A stretch of DNA of 64,000 nucleotides from Bugula neritina (taxonomy: Eukaryota > Animalia > Bryozoa). The stretch covers positions 3,483,628 to 3,547,627 of the forward strand of contig OZ037771.1 in NCBI GenBank assembly GCA_964035545.1, given 5' to 3'. Made by a program: the position numbers and the translations under genes. Positions 2,470 to 39,852 of this stretch are shown piece after piece (the first letter of the stretch is position 1; every line of letters starts with the position of its first letter). A model generated the notes under the pieces. It was not told the origin of the DNA and ran no database searches. It worked only from the letters and a program-made list of their open reading frames with translations.

Positions 2470-5400
2470 ATGAATTTTGTCCAACTATTCCTGAAGGTTA
2501 TTAGCCTTATCTTATGGCTACAAGGTAAAAATATCAATGTAGTTTGTATATCATTTCAAATAATAAAAGCTCTATTATTTTGTAAATTATAAAACTAAAT
2601 TGCATGGGTTTGTCTTTTAAAATAAATAAGGTTCTGTAACTGTAAGAAGAGCAGGAAGCTACTAGGACTTGTAGTGATATACTAATACTTACTTTGGTGC
2701 TCGGTGTTGTTAAATATAAGGTTCAGCACTAGCCCTAGGAGTAGAAGTACGTCTTAAGATATTGACTTTGAATATCACTCATTACTGATAGTAATTACTC
2801 ATTAGTCATTGAAATATAAAATATATTTATAGCTTTTAAATTTAATACAAGTTTTAAATATTTAATTCAGTGGTATCACTACCAGCACCAGCTTAGTAAC
2901 AGTGTTACTATCAGTTATCAGTATGACTATCACTATGACTATATGAGTATCAGTAACTGTAAGAGTATGCAAAAGTAACTACCCAAACCTGTGTTTTTGG
3001 CTAATAGTAATAGTAATACTAATAGCAATAATTAAACTTTTATCAAAAAATGTATAAAATGATAAGTTTTAAAATGTAGCAAAATTTGCCCAATTTAAAT
3101 TTTTAGTTGTTTGTTGACAGCTCATAGTCATTAGTTTTACCCCTTAAGTATAGGCAAGACAGATATATTTCCTACTAAAGTTTTATAAAAATATGAGTTA
3201 TACTGAAAGTGAATACCTACATTTTCTTACCAGCAATTTTCATTTGATAAAATTGTAATCAGCCAATGCGGACTACTAGTACTGCTACTAGTAGCAGTAC
3301 ACAAACTTAAGGTAAAGTGACCCAGTTCTGTTAGTAAAATAACGGTAAAAATTTATACCAGTTTGGTGTAAATTTTTTCAAATTGCAAATAATTAGGCTT
3401 TATTTCTAATTGATGATTTACATTCTGGTGTAGAAATGTAAAACTCAAAGATGCTAATGCTGTTGTTTTATTTTATAAATCATTTCATGATTGAAACATT
3501 GTATAGGCTTGTTTTGCTCTCTCACATCATAGATTTTACTTTAGTTATGCGTCCACGGCTTTTAGAGCCTTGAGTTATGCCTGAAGTTGAAAATCTGTAT
3601 TAATTACTAAAGATTGAATTACTCTTAATTTTAGAATAATTAATATCAATAAACAAGAATTAGACAATCTAGAAAAGTGCAAATAGTCCCAATTCACATG
3701 CAGTTGCAACATTTTGCTGTAGCTGGTGAATAGCTTTTTTTTCAGAAGTGCATTTTTGTCTATATATTTACAGTGAGTTATAGTGGATCCTCTACTACTA
3801 CCTCTACTACTACTGGTGCGAGTGGTTGTGGAAGCACCCTCACTAGCTTTGCTGGTACTCTAACATCTCCCAACTATCCTGGCAACTATCCACCTGATTT
3901 AAACTGTATCTGGACTATCACTGTACCCGCCGGCATTATTTCTCTGACCTTCATTAAAATAGACCTTGACCCACAAACTGGAATCTGTAGTGATAGTGGC
4001 GATAGTGTGCATGTGAGTTGTGTGTTTTACTGGCAACTAGTAGTTTCTAGGAGAGAAAAAGCATCTTGTTTATAAACCCTCCTTTTATACTGTCAAGGAG
4101 GTGGCTTGCTTTAAAATCTAAACCTTTAGCAATATTGATAGTTAATTTTTTATCATTCACATTAAAATCCAAGGGATAGATGTTTAAAAGCTCTCCGTAA
4201 GCACCAATCTCTTTTCTGATAGACAAATGAAAAATTTATTCATAAGCTAGGTTGGTTCGAATTGCCAATATGGATTTTAGATGTCAAAAATTAATACTTA
4301 AATTGTTGAATGTTCAAACATTTTATACTACTTTTATTCAAATGACAATAAACTTACAGCTTGATGTTACGTTTTACTTTCATTGATTTTGTCAATGCGA
4401 TTGAAATGAAGTGTGCCTTTTATAAAATTATATAGCAATTCTCTACATTTGAATCTTCATTCAGGTTTATGATGGATTAAGTGGTGACATAGTTATTTCC
4501 CTGTGTGGAACACAGGCACCTGTTACGGTTAATGGAATATCTAGATCACTTAGAGTTGTCTTCACTACTGACAGTACTGGAGAGCGAGTAGGATTTGCAG
4601 CCACTTGGACAAGTGAGTCATGTATTCAATATTTGAAGAATGTTTAGCTTCTGTGACCTTCAATGACCTTTCTGTTTAGTCGATATATGTGATGCCATGT
4701 CTTACTATGCTACACTATATACCTTTATATACTATTTTATACTCTCCTATGCTATATCCTGCACTATACTACACTTCACCATACCGTGCTATACTATTTT
4801 ATACTATGCTTCACTACGTTATAATGCTACACTATACTATACTCTATATGTCATACTATACTTTACTATTTTATGCTCTATTTAACAAATATCGTACACC
4901 TAGCACTAATTAGGATAGTTGCTATTATATGCCATAGCATTATAACATTGACCGTTATATTATAACACAGTTATACTGCAATGTTTAGCTGTTGGTTTAA
5001 GTTATTTTTTGCCTATTTGGTTCTAGGCGCTCTTCCCAGTACACAGTCAACATCCACCCCTTCTGGTAAGTTTATATACTTCCATTTTGATCAAATCAAC
5101 TTCTTCAAACAAATACACCAGTATTGTGTACTTGTATAGCCACGGTTGGTGTTTAAACACTGGAATTTTGCGTTTAGTAAACCTTAGTTGTAGTAGTAAA
5201 GGAAATAGGAGAGTAGCAACTGGTTAGTTTCAGGACATTTATTTCTATTGGATTAAAATTTCTGCACATTGGTGTTAGTTTTAGTTCAGAGTTGTTCATG
5301 TCTTTTTGAAACAAAAAAAACATGGATACTGTTAGACTTGACTATCATTTATGGCCACAGTTCTGTTGGAATAACTTTTCATTGATAATTTCTGCATTTT

Positions 5401-19090: not shown

Positions 19091-24737
<5,647 letters not shown>

Positions 24738-25789
24738 TGTGTCTCTGCTGTCAATAGATTTATAAAATATATCTGTGTTGAGATATTCCTGTCATGGTTA
24801 TATAATATATGAATTAAGAGCTATACATCTCATATTATACAATGAGATACTATAATAATATATTATATATATGAGATACTAATAATATATTATATATATG
24901 ACCGTGTGTGGTTATTACAAAATTATTCTGAAGCAATTATTATGTAATGCAACATGATATTATATATTGTAAGTTAATACAATATAATATAATATAATAT
25001 ATAATTGCTATACAAGTACATGCTACTGTATAGTTTGCAAAACATATTTTAATTGTTTACGCAGCTACATGACTATTAAATTAGTAGCAGAAGGCAATGG
25101 TGAGAAATGTGAGAAAATAATTTCATGCCGAGGAAGAGTTTTTCTGTTCAATAGCATTAGAAAAGCACCTTATGCTTGGCTTGATAAACTTATCTATTTT
25201 ATTTCGATAATTTAACCAGTCATTACTTTTTGTCAACGTAACAGACAACTTGTAAAGCACTATTAATAACAAATATATTATTTAGAGGAAGCAACTCCGA
25301 ATATAAATTCTTCACCCTGTGCCAAGTAATATTATACTTGGTAGGCTGGTAATTATTGCCATGAGCAGGTTTTACAACACAATATCATTGTTTTTGTTGC
25401 CATTAAGTTTAGAATTGAGAAATTATTCAATTAGTTTTCACAACATAACTAAACATTTTAGCAGTTTTTGGATCAACGATAATATCATAATTACTATAAT
25501 TGAAAGGGCTTATTGTTCTGAATAAACAATACGGTCAGATTAGTACTGCATGTGAACATTCAATTTCCGGAAAAAGTTATCAAGAAAATCCAATCAATGA
25601 AAAATATAACGTTATAACGTTATAAAAATACTATTACTTCTAGTAATTCTCTAATGATCATATAAGTACAACAACAGTTTGTTAATTTTAGTATTTGTGA
25701 TAACACAATCACTGAATAATTACCTAATCTAAGCAAATTCGCTGCATGAACGGGAGTCTTGAAGTATTTAGTAGTAAATTGTAATACTA

Positions 25790-26360: not shown

Positions 26361-28812
26361 ATTAATGATGTTTAACTCTGTTTGTGTGTAGATAAGCATA
26401 TCTTTTCACAAAGCCACTCATAATGACAGTAATACTAATAGTGACGGGAACACTTGCCAAGAACAAGCATGGCTGTCACTTTGAGTTTGAGTTTTAGTTG
26501 ATATTGAGAATTCACCTTTTTTCATTTAAATAAGAATGGTTATTTTTATTGCCATTCAAAGAAGTTGGAGTGATAAATGATTATCTGTTAATGGTTTTTC
26601 TATTATAATAATTATTATAATAATGATACACTAAAATAATAAATTGATCAACATGTAATGTTGACATTAGTTTTTTTAATATATATTTATTTAATCTAAT
26701 TGTTTTCACAAATATTTGAAACTAACAAGTTATGATCAATAATTTTTCAATATATTTGTAATGGGGGTGTAATATTCTATTTTTATTCAATCAAGATGTT
26801 TAAATTCTTTATTATAAAAAAATTGCTAGGGTAATGCAGTTACTAAGTAAAAGTGCTAGTTTTACTATTGATATTCATTGCAGGATCATAATAATTACCA
26901 ATACTACTATTCAAAACAGCAAGGGTAGCACAATAGGCAAGTTGGGGATTTTTGACAGTTTTCAAAAGTTCAATTCTCAACATATTTACAATGGATAGCT
27001 CAACTGGCTTAGTATTGCCTGTATCACATGAATTTTTATTAATGAGTTATTACACTAATAGTTTAAAATCAATTTTAAATTAAAAGGATTTCATCATTTT
27101 TATGAAGCCAAGCTCAGCGAAATGAAATTATATATAAAAGCCTCCTTATCCAATGCTCAATATTGCTAAGATAGTCACAGTTACCAAAGAATTTTGTAAA
27201 ATCTGCATAACCAATTCTCACTTTTAGTTTTAGTCTTCATACATTCCAATCACAATCATATCAACGGTTATGACATTTATGTGCTGAATTATCTGTGAAA
27301 TATTCATATTTAAATTTTACTTACACTTTTGTTTGCTGGGTCTGTTGCAAAACTATTTTATTTTAGTATGTCGTATTTGAAATTTACATTATATACCATT
27401 CAAACTCACTCCATGTTAATCTGCAATTTTTTGCCAGGCTTTCATTTTTTTTATATATATGAAAATATTTTTGTATATTCAATTCTCTTCTCAGTTAGAG
27501 TTTCTAACCCTCAATACTTGGGGGCGCCCAATACTTGAGCTGAAACCTCAAACATTTGTCTGTTTTAGACTCAAGAAAGAGTTTTGAATGCAGAGCGGCC
27601 CTGCAATACACAGTATGAGTGGGTAAGGCTTACATGTATGTTACTGCTACTCACAAGGATAGTACTGTATATAGTTTGTAAATTTAGCTGTGTAGTGGTA
27701 TTTTAATTCTCTTTAACTGAGGGTAGCTCTAAAGCATTTAAATGCAATGGAATTTACTGGAGATTGTGAAGTTTATGTTTTAATTAATCTTAAAGCTTAT
27801 GGCAGACTAAAATGTTTTAGTTGGTGGGGAGGGGGGGAGGGGTGGGGGTTAATATATACTAACTACAATGTCGCTGGTTTTTATTATAGTCTTCATTTAT
27901 TTATTATTCCTAAAATTGCTCATCTCTTTTCTCGTCTCAGGAAATTGTATTCAGTTTTTGTAATCAGATAGTATATAAATTATGTTACAAGATGCCAACA
28001 CATAATAAATTTGCACTCTATTATTACAAAGAAAATGTGGAAAAGTAAACTAAATGCTTGGAGTTATCTTCTCAGCATATTACATAAATACAGTGTGTAG
28101 AGTCAGCAGTACAAAAACCTATTGATACAGAGTATTATTATTCCTTGATGCATATTCTTATGTATAAATGCATATTTTTATCACTGCATAATAACAAAAC
28201 GTTTTGTAGTAACCAGATACTAAAACTAGTTGTAATTGTACCTTTCACTTGTTCATAACAAGAAAGAATATAAGTTTTTGATAAGTAATATAATAAGCAT
28301 TAGTTGTACTTACACACACAAGTTTATATTCCCATATTTTAAAAAAAGAGATGTATAGTTAAAGGCTGGAATTATTAGCTTTCACTTACTGTTAGAGAGC
28401 TCATTGCAACTGTTTTTGAGTGAAACTGTTTTAGGGGGTATTTACTAAGTTACAGTTCAACTTGCTATAAGCTTACTGTATATACACATGCACATATTTC
28501 TCAACAATAGGAATAATAGGTTTGAACTGAGGGGGTATTGTGTTACAGATTGATATATTGATAAGTGAGTAATTCAATAAGATTGGCTGAATATCAAATT
28601 ATTAGGAGCACAAAGTCAACTACGAGTGCTCCATTTACCGGACATAATTGCTAGAGTAAGATCTATGATAAGCCACAATACTTCAGCCTATAAGCAGCTG
28701 GCGGAATGCTAAGTCTACTGATAGGCTAAACTTATCTATAAATATACAGAGTAGCTGCTGAGTGCATCGTATGCAGTATACTAGCTACCAGTATCAGTTC
28801 AAGCAAAGTTGT

Positions 28813-29199
28813 AGCTGTGAAAGAAAGCTAGAGCTGTGAAAGTAAAGCTAGAGCTGTGAAAGTAAAGCTAGAGCTGTGAAAGTAAACTAGAGCTGTGAAA
28901 GTAAAGCTAGAGCTGTGAAAGTAAACTAGAGCTGTGAAAGTAAACTAGAGCTGTGAAAGAAAGCTAGAGCTGTGAAAGTAAAGCTAGAGCTGTGAAAGTA
29001 AAGCTAGAGCTGTGAAAGTAAAGCTAGAGCTGTGAAAGTAAACTAGAGCTGTGAAAGTAAACTAGAGCTGTGAAAGTAAACTAGAGCTGTGAAAGTAAAC
29101 TAGAGCTGTGAAAGTACAGCTAGAGCTGTGAAAGTAAAGCTAGAGCTGTGAAAGTACAGCTAGAGCTGTGAAAGTAAAGCTAGAGCTGTGAAAGTAAAG
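28813..29199 (+). repeat. 19/20-bp minisatellite (agctgtgaaagtaaa[g]ctag) x~20 just upstream of the PINCH ATG
   Basis: 20 copies of gctgtga counted; ends about 80 bp before ATG 29281. Confidence 0.97.
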
Positions 29200-29280
29200 T
29201 AATACTGCGAATTAGCGGAAGAAGACTTTGGATATTAAATTCAACTGAACTGGATTGGCTATTCAACTTCCTACCACAAC

Positions 29281-32200
29281 ATGGCCACACTTCATGCGCC
29301 TCAGTTTCTCCAACCTCTGAATGAGCAGAATGCTAGTCCACTGTTTAGGAGGAGAGCAAATACTAGAGAGCGAGATCATGCCCAGGTTGGGGGTGGTGGA
29401 GCTGATGGCCCTAACTTTGGGAGTAGTCGGTTTAGTGATACTCAAGCAAATCAGTAAGTGTCAGTTCAATGGTTGGGAAGGGAAAAAGAAGACTCACACT
29501 ATAAAGCAATTTTTTCTTAATCCATTTTCATCCTTTGACTTTTTAATAGAAAGGTTTAGTTGTGATAAATGCTAATTAACGCTCGTACTTATGTCTTAGT
29601 TTTACACACAACTACCTAGACATACCCTTGTTTAACTCTACAAATTGAGCTAGTTATTGATATGTTATTTTATAATACTCCATAAACTCAACTCAACTAA
29701 TATCATTGAAAAATTCTCTCAAAATAAGTGATGTGGTATGATTTTTGATTTGCAATATTGTGAAATTCGAAAAAATAAGAAAAAAAATTCCCTTTGAAAA
29801 TGTATTGAATGCAGAGATGCAAATTTTGCTCAAGTTTTTAATTTTTATTTTGATGTTAGGGTTTACTTTATCTCATGATTAGACAACTGCTTATGTTGCA
29901 AAGTTCTGCTAGAACTAATGCTAGGAACTTACACCTACAACTGCCACCTAGTTCTGGAAATGACTAGCATTGAAAACTCTCTATGAAGTTATTTCCTGTT
30001 TAAGTTCAGTAACCGAATATTTGGATAGCTTAAGTTTTTAGATTTTATTCTTGAATTTTGGTTTAAATCGCGAGTTGAGTTTCTCCAAAAGACTCCCTAC
30101 GTTATATTTTCATCTAGAACCTAGGCTTTACATAGTTGCTACACCAACATCTACTTGCCTAACAGAGTATGGTCACAGGGCCAGTTGTCTTTACAGTTTA
30201 CAGCTAATAACGAGTACACAACTCATTGCTTTGAACTGGAAGATATTTTCTCTCCTTGGTGAAATCTACTGCTTTTTATAAATATGTATTTCATGGCCCA
30301 CTTACTGATCAGATAGACTGGGGACTTGGTAATAATGCCCTCAGCTGCTGCACTTTGAACTGCTATAGTTTAATGAATGTAGACATTCACAGCTTACACA
30401 CTATCTTATGGCTGCAGTTATATCACCCTGAATACTATATCAAGTTACACTGCATGCCACTTGTACTACGCTAACCTTTATAACTACACAACTGGAACTA
30501 GTTTTTGTTCAGCTTTATTTTGACACAAGACTACTTAATTTCAAGAGAAAACAACTTCTGTCGCTCAGTTTGACTAGAATTTAGGTTACATAGTTGTCAG
30601 CTGTTGAATAAATAACATCGTACAATGAGGTGGTGCTACGTGTGTTATCACTACTTGCACCCAGCATTTGGTGGAGTTATAAGTCATCTGATAATCATGC
30701 ATGGGAAATTAGCCATTGGGTCTAGTGCTACGTACACGTAACTTGTTCTATTCTTTGCCAATAGCGCTGCCTTTGCACCCTTGTGCTGTTATTAGTCATG
30801 GGGGGACGTCTACCACTGGGCTTTCTACCCCCCCCCCCACTTTCGGGGTCAAACTCAATGCACAATTTCCTATCAGCTGATATGATAATCTTGACTAGTT
30901 TCTAGACTACTTACTAATATCCAATATCCATTTAACTTCTACACAACTATGTACCAGTAAATAAGTGCACCTGTTTCATGGTTTTTGTTAGCAATAGAAA
31001 AATATATAATATGTCTGCAAAATATTACATCAATAAAACCAGGTTACTATATCCAGGCAGCAGCAGCTAGTTGTATGCTGACTATATATTTACTCTCTTA
31101 CTATGTTATACAGTGACATGCAGTTGGGACCTGACGGTTCTCTTGCCATATGTACGAGATGTCACGAAGGTTTTGACGTCACCGAGAAGATCGTGAACTC
31201 TGGCGGAGATATGTGGCACCCAAGATGCTTTGTGTGAGTTTAACTTCAACTCCCCCCTCACCCCCCTTTCCCGGTCTGTCTATCCACTTGTAGGCAGAGT
31301 CAACACTGTATAAACCCAGTAGCTGATGATGTAATGTCATTGTGCAGTGGTACATGGGACATTAGCCTGCTGCTGTAAACTCTTTCTGTCTACTCAACTG
31401 TAGCTGTAGTTCTATGCACTGGCGTCATGAGTCAACCCCCCTCTAACCCTCCCCTACAAAAGATATATAAATTAATTTCGCTTTGGCTAGCCAGAATCAA
31501 CTGTAGACAGAAGTATACCATGTCATTTATACTGAAGGTTAACTCCAATTTTATGATATTGAACTATATTGTCATTTAGTTATATATCCGTAGTAAAATT
31601 GAAGTTGTTTCCCTTGACTTGTTCTAGATAATAATTTATAGTATGTCTTACTATTAAGCTGTAGTAGAAGTTGATTGTCTGATTGACCTAATTACCATTC
31701 ATTCGCTATCTCATAATCTAGGTCACCTAATCAATGTACTCATTGTAACGTAGTCATTGATCAAATGAAAGAACAAATGGTCAACTATAAGGGGCGCGTG
31801 TGGCACCCCCAGTGTTTTGTGTAAGTAAACTGCTCAGCGGTGACCCGCCATGTCCTCCTTAACCTCTACATATCCTCTCTAGACATCTACTAACACCCGG
31901 CCATCAGTCTCATTGGTTCCAATTCTTTCATTTCTCATACTCTATCCTAAGACCTAAGTTAACCTCATTTCATTTGACTCTAAGTTTTAGCACAAAATGT
32001 TCATATTTTGTCAAAATATCATTTGTCCCAGCAAGATATCTGTGAATATTGAGCATATTTTGAATCACTCCTTTATTTAAATAGTTACACTGAAGTAAGA
32101 GAGTAAATTTTCACTTATATATCAATAAATTTGATTGAAAAGTAAATAATTCTAGTCACTCATTAAGTCAGCTCTCGCTGCTTTCAATGTCAGGTGGTAG

Positions 32201-35200
32201 AGTGGGTGGTCTTATTCTCGGCTGTCTCTTTGTCTAACGTGATTGGCTCATTGCTCAGCTCATTGCCCGAGTTCTACTCATTCACTTTATGTCATCACGG
32301 AGAGGTTGTCTTGCTGTCCCATCTTTTTGTGCTCTCCGAGAGTAAAGAGTTGTGGTAAGGTTGACTGTTGAAGTGTAAGTGTGAGGTGTAATGTGTAAAT
32401 GTGTAAATGTGATGTGTAAGTGTCATGTGTAAGTGTCATGTGTGAGTGTGGTGTAAATGTGATGTGTAAGTGTCATGTGTAAGTGTCATGTGTGAGTGTG
32501 TGAAGTGTAAGTATGAACTATGAGGTGTAAGTGTGTAGTGTAAGTGTGATGTGTAAGTGCATAGTGTAAGTGCATAGTGTGAGTGTGATGTGTAAGTGCA
32601 TAGTGTAAGTGCATAGTGTAAGTGTGATGTGTAAGTGTATAGTGTAAGTATGATGTGTAAGTGCATAGTGTAAGTATGATTTGTAAGTGTGATGGAGAAG
32701 CTGAGATAGCTGTCGGATGTCATGGCAAATGTCACAAGAGACTCAAGTTGACAGGGAGACTGAGAGGTGGACTGGTGGTAACAATCTCATCCAGAGTTTT
32801 GAAACTTATTGTGTTTTAATCAAGTAGACGGTAGAGGATTGAAATTCCTGTCGATAATCTAGTTTCCAAGAAACTTTACAGTTGAATGCACTCTAGTAAA
32901 ATGTTTAAGTTGCAGGTATAATTACTTCAAGCACCTTAGATTTACTACTAAATGTATAATCATGTCCTTATGGCTTTTTCAACGGTCAAAAGTCTCCAAT
33001 ATATCAGGCCGAGCTTGCACGTGAGATACTGATGGTAGATGAGGTAGTAGTACCACTAAGTGACCGCCATGTTGTGTAGGTCACATGATCAGTCCTGACA
33101 CCTGTAGCTCAGGTCTATTACTCACCCTGTCTACACTTGGTGTTCAGTTGATGCATCATGTACCCTTTTGGTTCTAACTTTATATATTTACTGGCTGTAA
33201 AGGCTGAGACGTCTTTGTGGCTGTGTGCGAAGTGTGTCTGTAGCAACTGTATAGCCCGTGTTCTAACATGTTCACAATTGTCTTGTAGGTGTGCTCAGTG
33301 CTTCCAACCCTTTCCAGATGGTGTCTTTTATGAGGTAATGTGGTTAAAGTGCCTGCGGCACCCAAGTTTTTATCTAGTAATTTTTTTGTACTTAGTTTTT
33401 TCTTCTCATAATTTAAGTTTGAAAATAAATTTTGATAATGCCCAGGTTTTTTGTGGTAATGTAAACTTTATTAATCGAATAATGACTTCTTGGAGTTGTC
33501 TATCCAACCCTATATTTGTAATATTACGCAGCATGGCTGCATGTTTCATGCTGTAATTATGCTCTCAATTTTTAGTTTGAAGGAAGGAAGTATTGTGAGC
33601 ATGATTTCCAAGTGCTCTACGCTCCTTGCTGCAACAAGTGTGGCGAGTTTGTGATTGGTCGAGTTATTAAAGCAATGAACACGTCGTGGCACCCTTCATG
33701 TTTCCATTGTCAACTCTGTGACGCTCCTTTGGCTGATATCGGATTCGTTAAAAATATGGGCAGGTATGACGTCTCTTTCTGATTCCCATGTGAATACTTA
33801 AATGACTATTTGACGGAGTTTATGTGTCCAGATTTAGACAGCGTGGTTTGTCTAATACTTTGGTCAGAGTAGATAGATGTGAACATATTTCTCTTACATT
33901 ATGTAACGTAATCTTAGTAGAATTTTGGTTATTTCTATGTTTGTGGCGTCTTTAGTATACACATCTCTAAATTGTATCAACAACTGCCATTATCAGTGTA
34001 TTTCTTCATATGTAGAAAGTGTGTAAAGTGACTCGCTGTTACCTGGAACTATACTGTTTCCTGTACATCACATTACCCTGTCCTAAACAAAGCTACGCTA
34101 TCTGCATGCATATATCATGAATAAGTACTGGTGGTATTTATATGAGCTGCTTCATTATTTTTTCTTATCCATTATCATATGATGGTGAAGGAGGATATTT
34201 ATAATGTAAAACAATAAGAGATAACTTTGTGTGACAAATAGCTGGGTTAATTTATATTTATTGACTAGTGAGCCTGTTCCATGCGCCAACATGTGGCCGC
34301 TGGTTGCCATAGTAACAGTGAGTATAGCCTAAGGTCCAACTTCCTATTGTAGAGCTCTGTGTAGAGAATGCAATGCTAGAGAGAAAGCATCTGGTAGTGG
34401 GAAATATGTCTGCCATAAATGTCAGTAAGTATTCCACCTGTTTGCCAGCCTTTATATCTGGTGAGGGGTTGACAACTCCAGGTGTTGTCATTCCCAATTT
34501 TTGTGTGAGTAACTTACGGTGAGTGTAATTAGATTGTAAATGAATAATATATAGCATAGCATAATATATATATTATAGGATGGTACAGCATAGCATAGTG
34601 TATATATTATAGAATGGTACAGTATAGCATAGTATAGGCTATAGTGTATAGGCCCTTTAGGTTTACAGTTTTTATTTGAGGTTTTTTATTGTTATTTTCT
34701 GCCAGTTTTTATTTCTATTGAAAAATTATTCATTTCCAATTTGCTAATGCTAAACTAGTACTAAACTTATTTCTAATTGTAGTATGCTGATATATTTTTG
34801 AATTATTTGAATTACAGCAAAAATTGTTTAAGCTTTTCAAGTTTGTGCATTTTGTTGCCTAGTTTTTCTCAAGATGGCAGGACAACTCTTCAAATAAATT
34901 TAGTATATTATAATTATATCATGATGTGACCTCCAATTATAGCATAATAATTACAGCATATTAACATGAATGCTAACCATTGTATTATAATATATCGTAA
35001 CGACGTGGTGATGAGATAGCTTCACGAGATGATATATCGTAGTGTATTTTTACACAAAGCTAGTACTATTGATATTCTTGTAAGAACATTCTAGAATAAG
35101 GATGGTTCATTCTTTCCAATGTTGTAGCGCTATCATAGACGAGGGGCACATCAAGTTGAAAGGGGACGTGTACCACCCGTACCACTTCAGCTGTGCCTCG

Positions 35201-37309
35201 TGTGGCACTGAGCTAACCCCAGACGCCAGAGAGAAGAACGGAGAACTGCTCTGTCTCAGGTGTCACGACAAGGCAGGTGTCCCCATATGTGGAGCCTGCA
35301 GGCGTCCCATTGAGGGTAGAGTCATCAACGCATTAGGTCAGTGTCTGCTACTTCCCCTCTCGGTCTCTCTTATCACCGCAACTTCTACAGCAGTGTTTTC
35401 ATGCAACGCCATGTTTGATTTTTATATACAGTAGCTTTGCTATTGCGATTCAAATTGAATATTTTTGGTGTATAAGGATATGCATTGTATTGTGGGTAGT
35501 GTTTGCCTTATATACAAGAGAGTAGGAGTGGTTATAGCACTGGCATAGTAAATACTAGGTTGTGGGTTCGAATCCCAGCTGGGCCTTTGGTAATGTCAAG
35601 AAATGCATGATTGCTCCTATGACATAGTACACACTGTCCTTAAAATATGTCTCAACTATCAGTGGTTCTCACAGAGATGGGGACTTGAAACGACCAACTC
35701 TTCATGTTGTATAATGTTTACTCTAGTTTCGACTAAAGCAGCTATTTAGTGCTAACTGTCTGCAATACAAGATTATCTGATAATATGCAGGGAAGACATG
35801 GCACCCAGAACACTTTGTGTGTGCAAAGTGTGAGAAACCGTTTCATGGATCAAGACATTACGAGAGAAGAGGTCTGGCGTACTGTGAGAATCATTACCAT
35901 CAGTTGTTTGGAGATCTTTGCTTCGTCTGCAACAACGTGATTCCAGGAGATGGTGAGGCAACTCCCTATAACTATAACTGCTAGGATATTATATTACTCT
36001 ATTACTAAATATATTACTCTATTACTCAATATATTACTCTATTATCAAATATATTATTCTATTACTCAATATATTGCTCTATTACTCAATATATTACTCT
36101 ACTACTCAATATATTACTCTACTACTCAATATATTACTCTATTACTCAATATATTACTCTATTACTCAATATATTACTCTATTATTCATATATTACTCCA
36201 TTACTCACATATACTCTATTACTCAATATATTACTCATTTATTACTCTATTACTCAATATATTACTCTTCTGTTGACAGTGTGCCGTGCCCTCAACAAGT
36301 GTTGGTGTTTCAACCACTTCTCTTGCTCAGCCTGTGATCGTCAGCTCTCAGAAAAGTAAGTGCGGGCAGTAGTCTGTAATCTCAGTTCGTTTCCTGTTTC
36401 CATGTTTTTAGTGTATAGGGTGCCTGGTTTGCAGCATCATTTGCAATCTTGTTCAATTAATTTTGGCGATAATGAATATTTATTAATTAGATTTACAGTT
36501 TCTGTTACATTTTTAGTCGCTATCAGATAAATATTGGTAACGGAACAGGTTGGTTGAACCACTTTTGGCATAATGCTACACCAAAATCAATTGCCCTGCA
36601 ATCTGTCTCCTAAACAGGGTTATCTCTTAGAGTAATAAATTATTTAGAAGACTTGAAGTCAGTCTACACTCGAGGGAAATTTGTGTCTGTGCTGTTTGCC
36701 CAGTTTTACGTACATAACCAATTAGATAGGGTATTATAAAGCTAGTTGAAATTTTGCTCATTGTGAGTTCATCTTTGTTCTCTGTTACTGTATTCAAGTA
36801 CATTCATAATTAAATAGAATCACTTGACTAATAAATTATATAACATTTGTCCGGTTATATTTCACGGCAAAGTTTAATAAGAATATCGTAACCTACTTTT
36901 TCCAAATAGTGTTTCATCATTCCTGGGTCAACGAACTTCATCAGATTTTCCAGCTAAAAACTTTTCAAATAATTTTCAATAATTTTTTTTGTAGTTAGGA
37001 ATAATGTAACGTGGGACTGAAGTCAACTTTCGGACTTTTGACTTAACAGACTATAAAAAGTTGTATATTGGTTGTTTTTTGTATACCATTTAATCTCCAA
37101 ACTGTAGTTGTGTAACATTCCATCTCCATACTGTAGCTGTGTAACATGAAACCAGCATCTACAGTTTTGTCAACTCGTTGTGGATTTATATTTTTAGAAC
37201 AAAGTTCTTTGTGATGGACGTGAAGCCGGTATGCAAGCACTGCTTTGAGAAGTTTCCCAGTGAGCTACAGAAACGGCTGAAGAAAGCTTCTGATGCCGGA
37301 TTGGGCTGA
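29281..37309 (+). CDS. LIMS1: PINCH / LIMS (5 LIM domains; ILK-PINCH-parvin complex), 385 aa with exon 2A
   Basis: join(29281-29453,31114-31233,33289-33334,33576-33763,34353-34424,35128-35336,35791-35952,36280-36355,37198-37309), 1158 nt, phases consistent. [99 protein letters not shown] is clearly PINCH. Likely co-ortholog of LIMS1/LIMS2; choice of first exon is less certain. Confidence 0.96.
31722..31820 (+). CDS. Alternative PINCH exon 2B encoding a second version of LIM1 zinc finger 1
   Basis: tctag|g tca cct...ttt gt|gtaagt; 99 nt, phase 2/2 like exon 2A; [33 protein letters not shown] has all four Zn ligands (C-x2-C-x19-H-x2-C). Confidence 0.85.
32372..32692 (+). repeat. 13-bp minisatellite (gtgtaagtgtgat / gtgtaagtgcata) in PINCH intron
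   Basis: Direct reading; 18 GTAAGT and 3 GTGAGT hexamers counted. Confidence 0.92.
35520..35630 (+). mobile_element. tRNA-derived SINE copy in PINCH intron
   Basis: A-box-like agtggttatagcactg, B-box gggttcgaatccc, body ttggtaatgtcaagaaatgcatgattgctcct; no tRNA acceptor stem; homologous to 18563-18686(-). Confidence 0.75.
35988..36268. repeat. 20-bp minisatellite (atattactctattactcaat) filling most of a PINCH intron
   Basis: Tandem units run to about 11 nt before the acceptor at 36279. Confidence 0.93.

Positions 37310-38098: not shown

Positions 38099-39852
<1,754 letters not shown>

Follow-up and report, generated by a model that had tools for sequence, protein, structure and literature searches.

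The PINCH gene of Bugula neritina carries two tandem exons, 2A (31114-31233, 120 nt) and 2B (31722-31820, 99 nt), each of which encodes the first zinc finger (finger 1) of LIM1, and exon 2B is likely an old tandem copy of 2A that has been kept as an optional cassette, giving a long form of the protein with a new finger-1 surface. All positions are those of the window, the whole stretch of 64,000 nucleotides that was analysed, and all PINCH exons described in it lie on its + strand. Both exons have AG acceptors, GT donors and phase 2/2, and the coordinates, lengths, translations, splice sites and phases reported for them in an earlier note on this DNA were all exact. Both matched Pfam LIM positions 1-28 (E about 1e-4), and their alignment contained 15 identical columns, including the four zinc ligands. 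In a search of the genome (216 Mb), 2A matched only itself and 2B, and 2B matched only itself and 2A; PINCH is therefore a single-copy gene in B. neritina. The tandem duplication that had been claimed was supported.

Together with the seven exons downstream, the gene model is a five-LIM PINCH, and its frame stays open with A, with B, with both or with neither. The common exon E3 (33289-33334) opens finger 2 of LIM1 with the CAQCF segment and was placed by the joint 31233>33289, E4 (33576-33763; gene model and RNA contigs) encodes the end of LIM1 and most of LIM2, and E5 (34353-34424; gene model, with RNA loose ends after 33763) encodes the end of LIM2 and the start of LIM3. The gene model further comprises E6 (35128-35336; LIM3 and the start of LIM4), E7 (35791-35952; LIM4 and the start of LIM5), E8 (36280-36355; LIM5) and E9 (37198-37309), which holds the end of LIM5, a helix-like C-terminal tail and the stop. 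The 2A form is a LIM-only protein with five tandem LIM patterns; its LIM1 is nearest to PINCH LIM1 and carries the CAQCF segment, and the best PDB matches of 2A are LIM1 of PINCH1/2. Two alternative first coding exons precede 2A. E0 (27569-27622, 5' limit approximate, ATG at 27615, phase 2) encodes Met-Ser-Gly and is absent from the earlier note. In runs X2 and X5 it precedes 2A, the loose ends before 31113 mapping to 27592-27621 with 3 mismatches; a similar short start is present in Watersipora isoforms X3/X4. E1 (29281-29453, phase 2) encodes a long N-terminus and is joined to 2A (29453>31114) in run X3, in which the contigs that bear it begin at 29241. The E1 motif L-x-x-L...S-x-L-[FY]-x-R-R-[RK] recurs in 81 fetched PINCH proteins, among them long isoforms of molluscs, arthropods, amphioxus and vertebrates, and by this recurrence it can be regarded as a conserved alternative PINCH N-terminus. 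Among full-length relatives, the closest is Watersipora subatra, which has the same exon lengths.

The surroundings of the gene contain several further features. A pure CA repeat of ~1.7 kb (38109-39849) lies directly past the 3' end of PINCH, and minisatellites of period 20, 13 and 20 (28813-29199, 32369-32694 and 35990-36268, respectively) lie within or just ahead of its introns. An upstream gene on the + strand, with last exons that look ankyrin-like by eye, ends at 24000-24740.

Splicing was read from assembled contigs only (four runs from three studies, placed on 29230-33800); the labelling of these runs as RNA is a guess, and spliced joints are present in them. Their haplotypes differed from the window by several per cent. 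The joint 2A>E3 (31233>33289), which skips 2B, was found in all four runs (depth 92, 861, 141 and 75), and the joint 2A>2B (31233>31722) was found in X3 (depth 8) and X5 (depth 11), two different studies, with a share of ~5% and ~13%, respectively, as crudely estimated from contig depth. Exon 2B thus has both the skipping joint and the upstream inclusion joint of a cassette, and alternative use, as proposed in the earlier note, was supported. Exon 2A was present in every spliced form observed and was the only one of the two exons seen joined by itself to both flanks. Among the five junctions that had been listed for checking, 29453-31114, 31233-33289 and 31233-31722 were seen. The remaining two, 29453-31722 and 31820-33289, were not seen in the contigs of the four runs, nor was a joint from E0 to 2B; such assemblies drop short low-depth links, so that an absent joint is not proof of absence. 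Annotated isoforms from Watersipora, Lingula and molluscs contain the 2B>E3 joint, and we infer that it is also made in B. neritina. It is likely that 2A>E3 is the default and 2A>2B>E3 a minority route through the cassette. Exon 2B would then be frame-neutral, the default route yielding the five-LIM PINCH and the minority route a protein of eleven fingers, or five and a half LIMs.

Most of the intron at 31234-33288, around 2B, was present in unspliced form in X1 and X2, at about a tenth of exon depth, and it is possibly a detained intron; the intron before 2A was almost uncovered in the same runs. Across 29500-33300, introns of the public individuals (runs X1-X5, L005) differed from the window by 5-10%, which suggests cryptic species or very high polymorphism.

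The contigs that contain 2B in X3 and X5 cross its donor unbroken from 31722 to 32208, and in both runs the coverage ends exactly there; bin depths past 32208 fit zero coverage. In X5, the contig with 2B had a depth of 11.4, nearly even with the 10.9 farther along, which indicates read-through in the majority of 2B molecules. That the contigs end there because of a repeat was rejected, since 31821-32208 is unique sequence. Reading through the donor directly meets a TAA stop (31822-31824), and the extension (31821-32208), a possible alternative 3' end, contains an AATAAA at 32124-32129. These observations would fit 2B acting in B. neritina mainly as an alternative last exon, with its donor ignored and the RNA ending near 32208; the outcome would be either a 76-aa two-finger protein (from the E0 start) without the ILK-binding finger or a drain on full-length PINCH mRNA. 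We consider this unlikely. The stop arises from any phase-2 GT|GTAAG donor and follows exon A too in other species, the consensus 2B donor is retained in five genomes, and the Watersipora annotation, for an exon likewise of 99 nt, has B>E3. Furthermore, no such short protein was found in the homolog search or among the listed isoforms, and slow splicing of the intron held unspliced in X1 and X2 could also yield read-through. The read-through form may therefore be a side product of the cassette, and a truncated 76-aa PINCH may also exist in B. neritina.

The search for 2B in related genomes that the earlier note had called for gave an orthologous exon in Watersipora, Lingula, oyster and chiton. 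PINCH proteins were retrieved with an alignment in which each exon reference was placed separately on a length scaffold, with isoforms taken from cluster look-ups, and the fingers ahead of CAQCF were classified in about 300 fetched proteins; the survey is a sample and not a census of taxa. Finger A alone was present in 268 proteins, A and B in tandem in 31 (counting Pinctada P0325, the A finger of which has a His-to-Cys change), and a complete B alone in one. The A+B proteins came from Watersipora, Lingula, Patella, Haliotis, Gigantopelta, oysters, scallops, Mytilus and Pinctada, mostly alongside A-only isoforms from the same genus. The same A, B and CAQCF arrangement stands in RefSeq in XP_067949219.1 and XP_067949221.1 (Watersipora), XP_013382896.1 (Lingula), XP_050389046.1 (Patella) and XP_011427146.3 (oyster), all of which are automatic annotation models; the read-through form seen here is not among these isoforms. 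Watersipora isoforms X1/X2 and X3/X4 differ solely by the 33-aa B segment behind A. In genomic DNA, the order A-B-E3, phase 2 and GTAAGT donors are shared by the Watersipora, Lingula and oyster loci. In the chiton Liolophura, an exon of the B type (L011, 19040-19175) is absent from the three listed isoforms, and its first Cys is missing in the assembly (H-G-Q-K-C). No B was found between A and E3 in the loci of Lineus (where the intron is 230 nt), Helobdella, Ridgeia, Priapulus and Ptychodera, and the loci and proteins examined from deuterostomes, ecdysozoans, annelids and nemerteans likewise gave no such exon. A region search with the Patella B returned only itself, a search of 2B against 50%-identity representatives returned nothing but LIM proteins unrelated to it and a single spurious repeat, and a homolog search with the 2A/2B alignment returned one intron-read-through fragment. 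In Priapulus, exon A recurs together with its flanks further down the gene, as a nearly identical but frameshifted copy (L010, about 5120-5270); this copy is a recent duplicate or an assembly artefact and is unrelated to B.

The earlier note had taken 2A and 2B to be mutually exclusive, so that LIM1 would consist of either A or B with finger 2 in a five-LIM protein. The anatomy fits this arrangement, with adjacent homologous exons of equal phase, and a rare joint from an upstream exon to 2B could have been pruned from the contigs. However, the direct joining of 2A to 2B in two studies is evidence against strict exclusion, no upstream>2B joint was found in the contigs, and A+B proteins occur in three phyla. 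The 488-nt intron between the two exons imposes no steric bar, and their joint inclusion preserves the frame. The single protein with B and no A, Ostrea XP_056005636.1, has a start that seems to lie in the intron before B and so appears to be read in from there; two Mytilus isoforms begin at a Met within B. These starts leave room for a minor B-first transcript, but mutual exclusion is very unlikely and that part of the earlier claim was not supported, whereas the three-finger N-terminus that had been foreseen on joint inclusion turned out to be the actual isoform.

In a tree of the fingers, a single branch (support 97/96) separated all twelve B fingers, as one clade, from the 25 A fingers, and the window B was on a long branch; this tree rests on a short alignment of 28 columns with a midpoint root and contains no FHL rows. 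In the B fingers, the GF after the first Cys pair is swapped for another hydrophobic pattern, and VNY-x-G is found where A has VNS-x-G. The simplest reading of these sequences would be one duplication before the mollusc/brachiopod/bryozoan split, followed by losses. Molluscs, brachiopods and bryozoans diverged in the Cambrian or earlier. The window and Watersipora B fingers are identical at 19 of 32 residues with 64% DNA identity, and the introns of the two loci have no detectable similarity. Within the species, no change was listed in 31674-31845, against an intron figure of 5%. P is 0.005 for the exon but would be 0.24 if the three unlisted differences fell in it; the within-species conservation of 2B is thus suggestive only. 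Purifying selection on 2B, as proposed in the earlier note, is supported by its conservation across three phyla. A duplicate in decay, whose inclusion is no more than noise in splicing, would fit the low inclusion of 2B, the long branch of the window B, the chiton copy without the first Cys and the absence of 2B from several lineages, but this explanation is very unlikely, given the four ligands and both splice sites retained, the residues shared with Watersipora across dissimilar introns, and an exon kept with its own signature in bryozoans, a brachiopod, gastropods and bivalves.

With 2B as a cassette, LIM1 would be rebuilt by insertion. In LIM1, the Val codon that separates the two fingers is interrupted by an intron, so that finger 1, at the canonical spacing of two residues, comes from whichever exon is last before E3. 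Exon 2B, like 2A, stops two residues ahead of CAQC in the common exon, and B, not A, would therefore pair with finger 2 as LIM1 when 2B is included, and A would be displaced towards the N-terminus as an unpaired half-LIM with a linker of variable length. Ligand spacing from A to B is 6-17 residues, compared with 2 within a LIM; A thus appears too distant and too variable in position to form a LIM with B and would become a half-LIM of the FHL kind. For Watersipora B with finger 2, a structure model had a pLDDT of 88.5, on an alignment rich in canonical LIM1 that biases the fold, and its best PDB matches were PINCH2 and PINCH1 LIM1 of ILK complexes (TM 0.77 and 0.72, respectively); the model indicates that B with finger 2 is compatible with a LIM fold. 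The model of the whole A+B+LIM2 region was poor (pLDDT 58). A swap of half of LIM1, as the earlier note had put it, therefore stands insofar as finger 1 changes, but the route is insertion of B after A and not exclusion of one of them.

The FHL (four and a half LIM) family also has an N-terminal half-LIM ahead of its full LIMs (PMC3305314). Exon A as an N-terminal half-LIM resembles this arrangement, and 2B alone had its best PDB match in FHL1 fingers (E 5e-7, via a VxYKG..WH motif), with a weak match to PINCH. In FHL, however, the half-LIM is fixed and the LIMs are of the TES class, whereas here it is optional, the displaced finger is the original A and the protein is a PINCH, with no TES-class ancestry of its LIM domains found. 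Derivation of 2B from an FHL gene was rejected by position, junction and the search of its own genome. By its position and junction, 2B looks like a copy of 2A, and its likeness to FHL is thus probably convergent.

ILK binds the second finger of PINCH LIM1 (PMC2198863), and the Q38A change in fly PINCH breaks ILK binding (PMC3610608). In the alignment, the equivalent of fly Q38 is the Gln of CAQCF in the common exon E3. Because the ILK-binding finger 2 is common to both forms, both probably bind ILK, and the tuning of ILK assembly through 2B as an on/off switch would be less likely. The long form would still build the ILK-PINCH-parvin complex, offering its other finger-1 surface and extra finger to another partner, and it would probably be limited to one tissue or stage. 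This functional part, in which ILK binding is kept and a new partner is gained in one tissue or stage, is plausible, with slightly more doubt than confidence on our side. A stronger version, which we regard as possible but rather doubtful, would be a splicing switch older than the divergence of molluscs, brachiopods and bryozoans that rebuilds LIM1 by insertion and releases a half-LIM in one cell type, for example at muscle attachment sites, with a new partner or a changed ILK affinity and with early polyadenylation behind 2B giving a short two-finger product. Sensing of tensed actin by tandem LIMs is not proposed for the A+B form, since LIMS1 is a non-responder in such sensing (10.1101/2020.03.06.979245, 10.1101/2020.03.06.980649) and the length of the A-B linker varies.

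Five LIM domains in tandem are the published description of the PINCH / LIMS1-2 / UNC-97 / steamer duck class (Koch et al., 2012, PMC3305314). The B. neritina gene is like this class in its five LIMs, a LIM1 like that of PINCH1/2 in ILK complexes, its single copy and its CAQCF finger 2, and it differs in the optional eleventh finger inside LIM1. Substitutions derived from tandem exon duplication, with homologous exons that are mutually exclusive (PMC8373072, PMC9741552), are alike in that old homologous exons are alternatively spliced and one domain segment is changed; here, by contrast, the copy is added behind the original, and the substitution in LIM1 results from insertion. The A+B isoforms are already known as automatic RefSeq annotation, and the host gene is an ordinary PINCH. 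No published account of an extra LIM1 finger in PINCH was found in a literature search that was thin in subscription journals, and exon 2B is real, ancient and probably undescribed in print. A conserved five-and-a-half-LIM PINCH in three phyla would be an exception to the five-LIM description across animals, and it would represent domain remodelling by insertion, in which the addition of an exon for half a domain exchanges one half of a folded domain, with no mutual exclusion in splicing. The presence or absence of 2B (present in bryozoan, brachiopod and mollusc, absent in the annelids and nemertean tested) may also serve as a rare genomic character for lophotrochozoan relationships, with losses likely. 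Furthermore, because ILK binding maps mainly to finger 2, the A+B isoform would provide a natural test of the role of finger 1 of LIM1.
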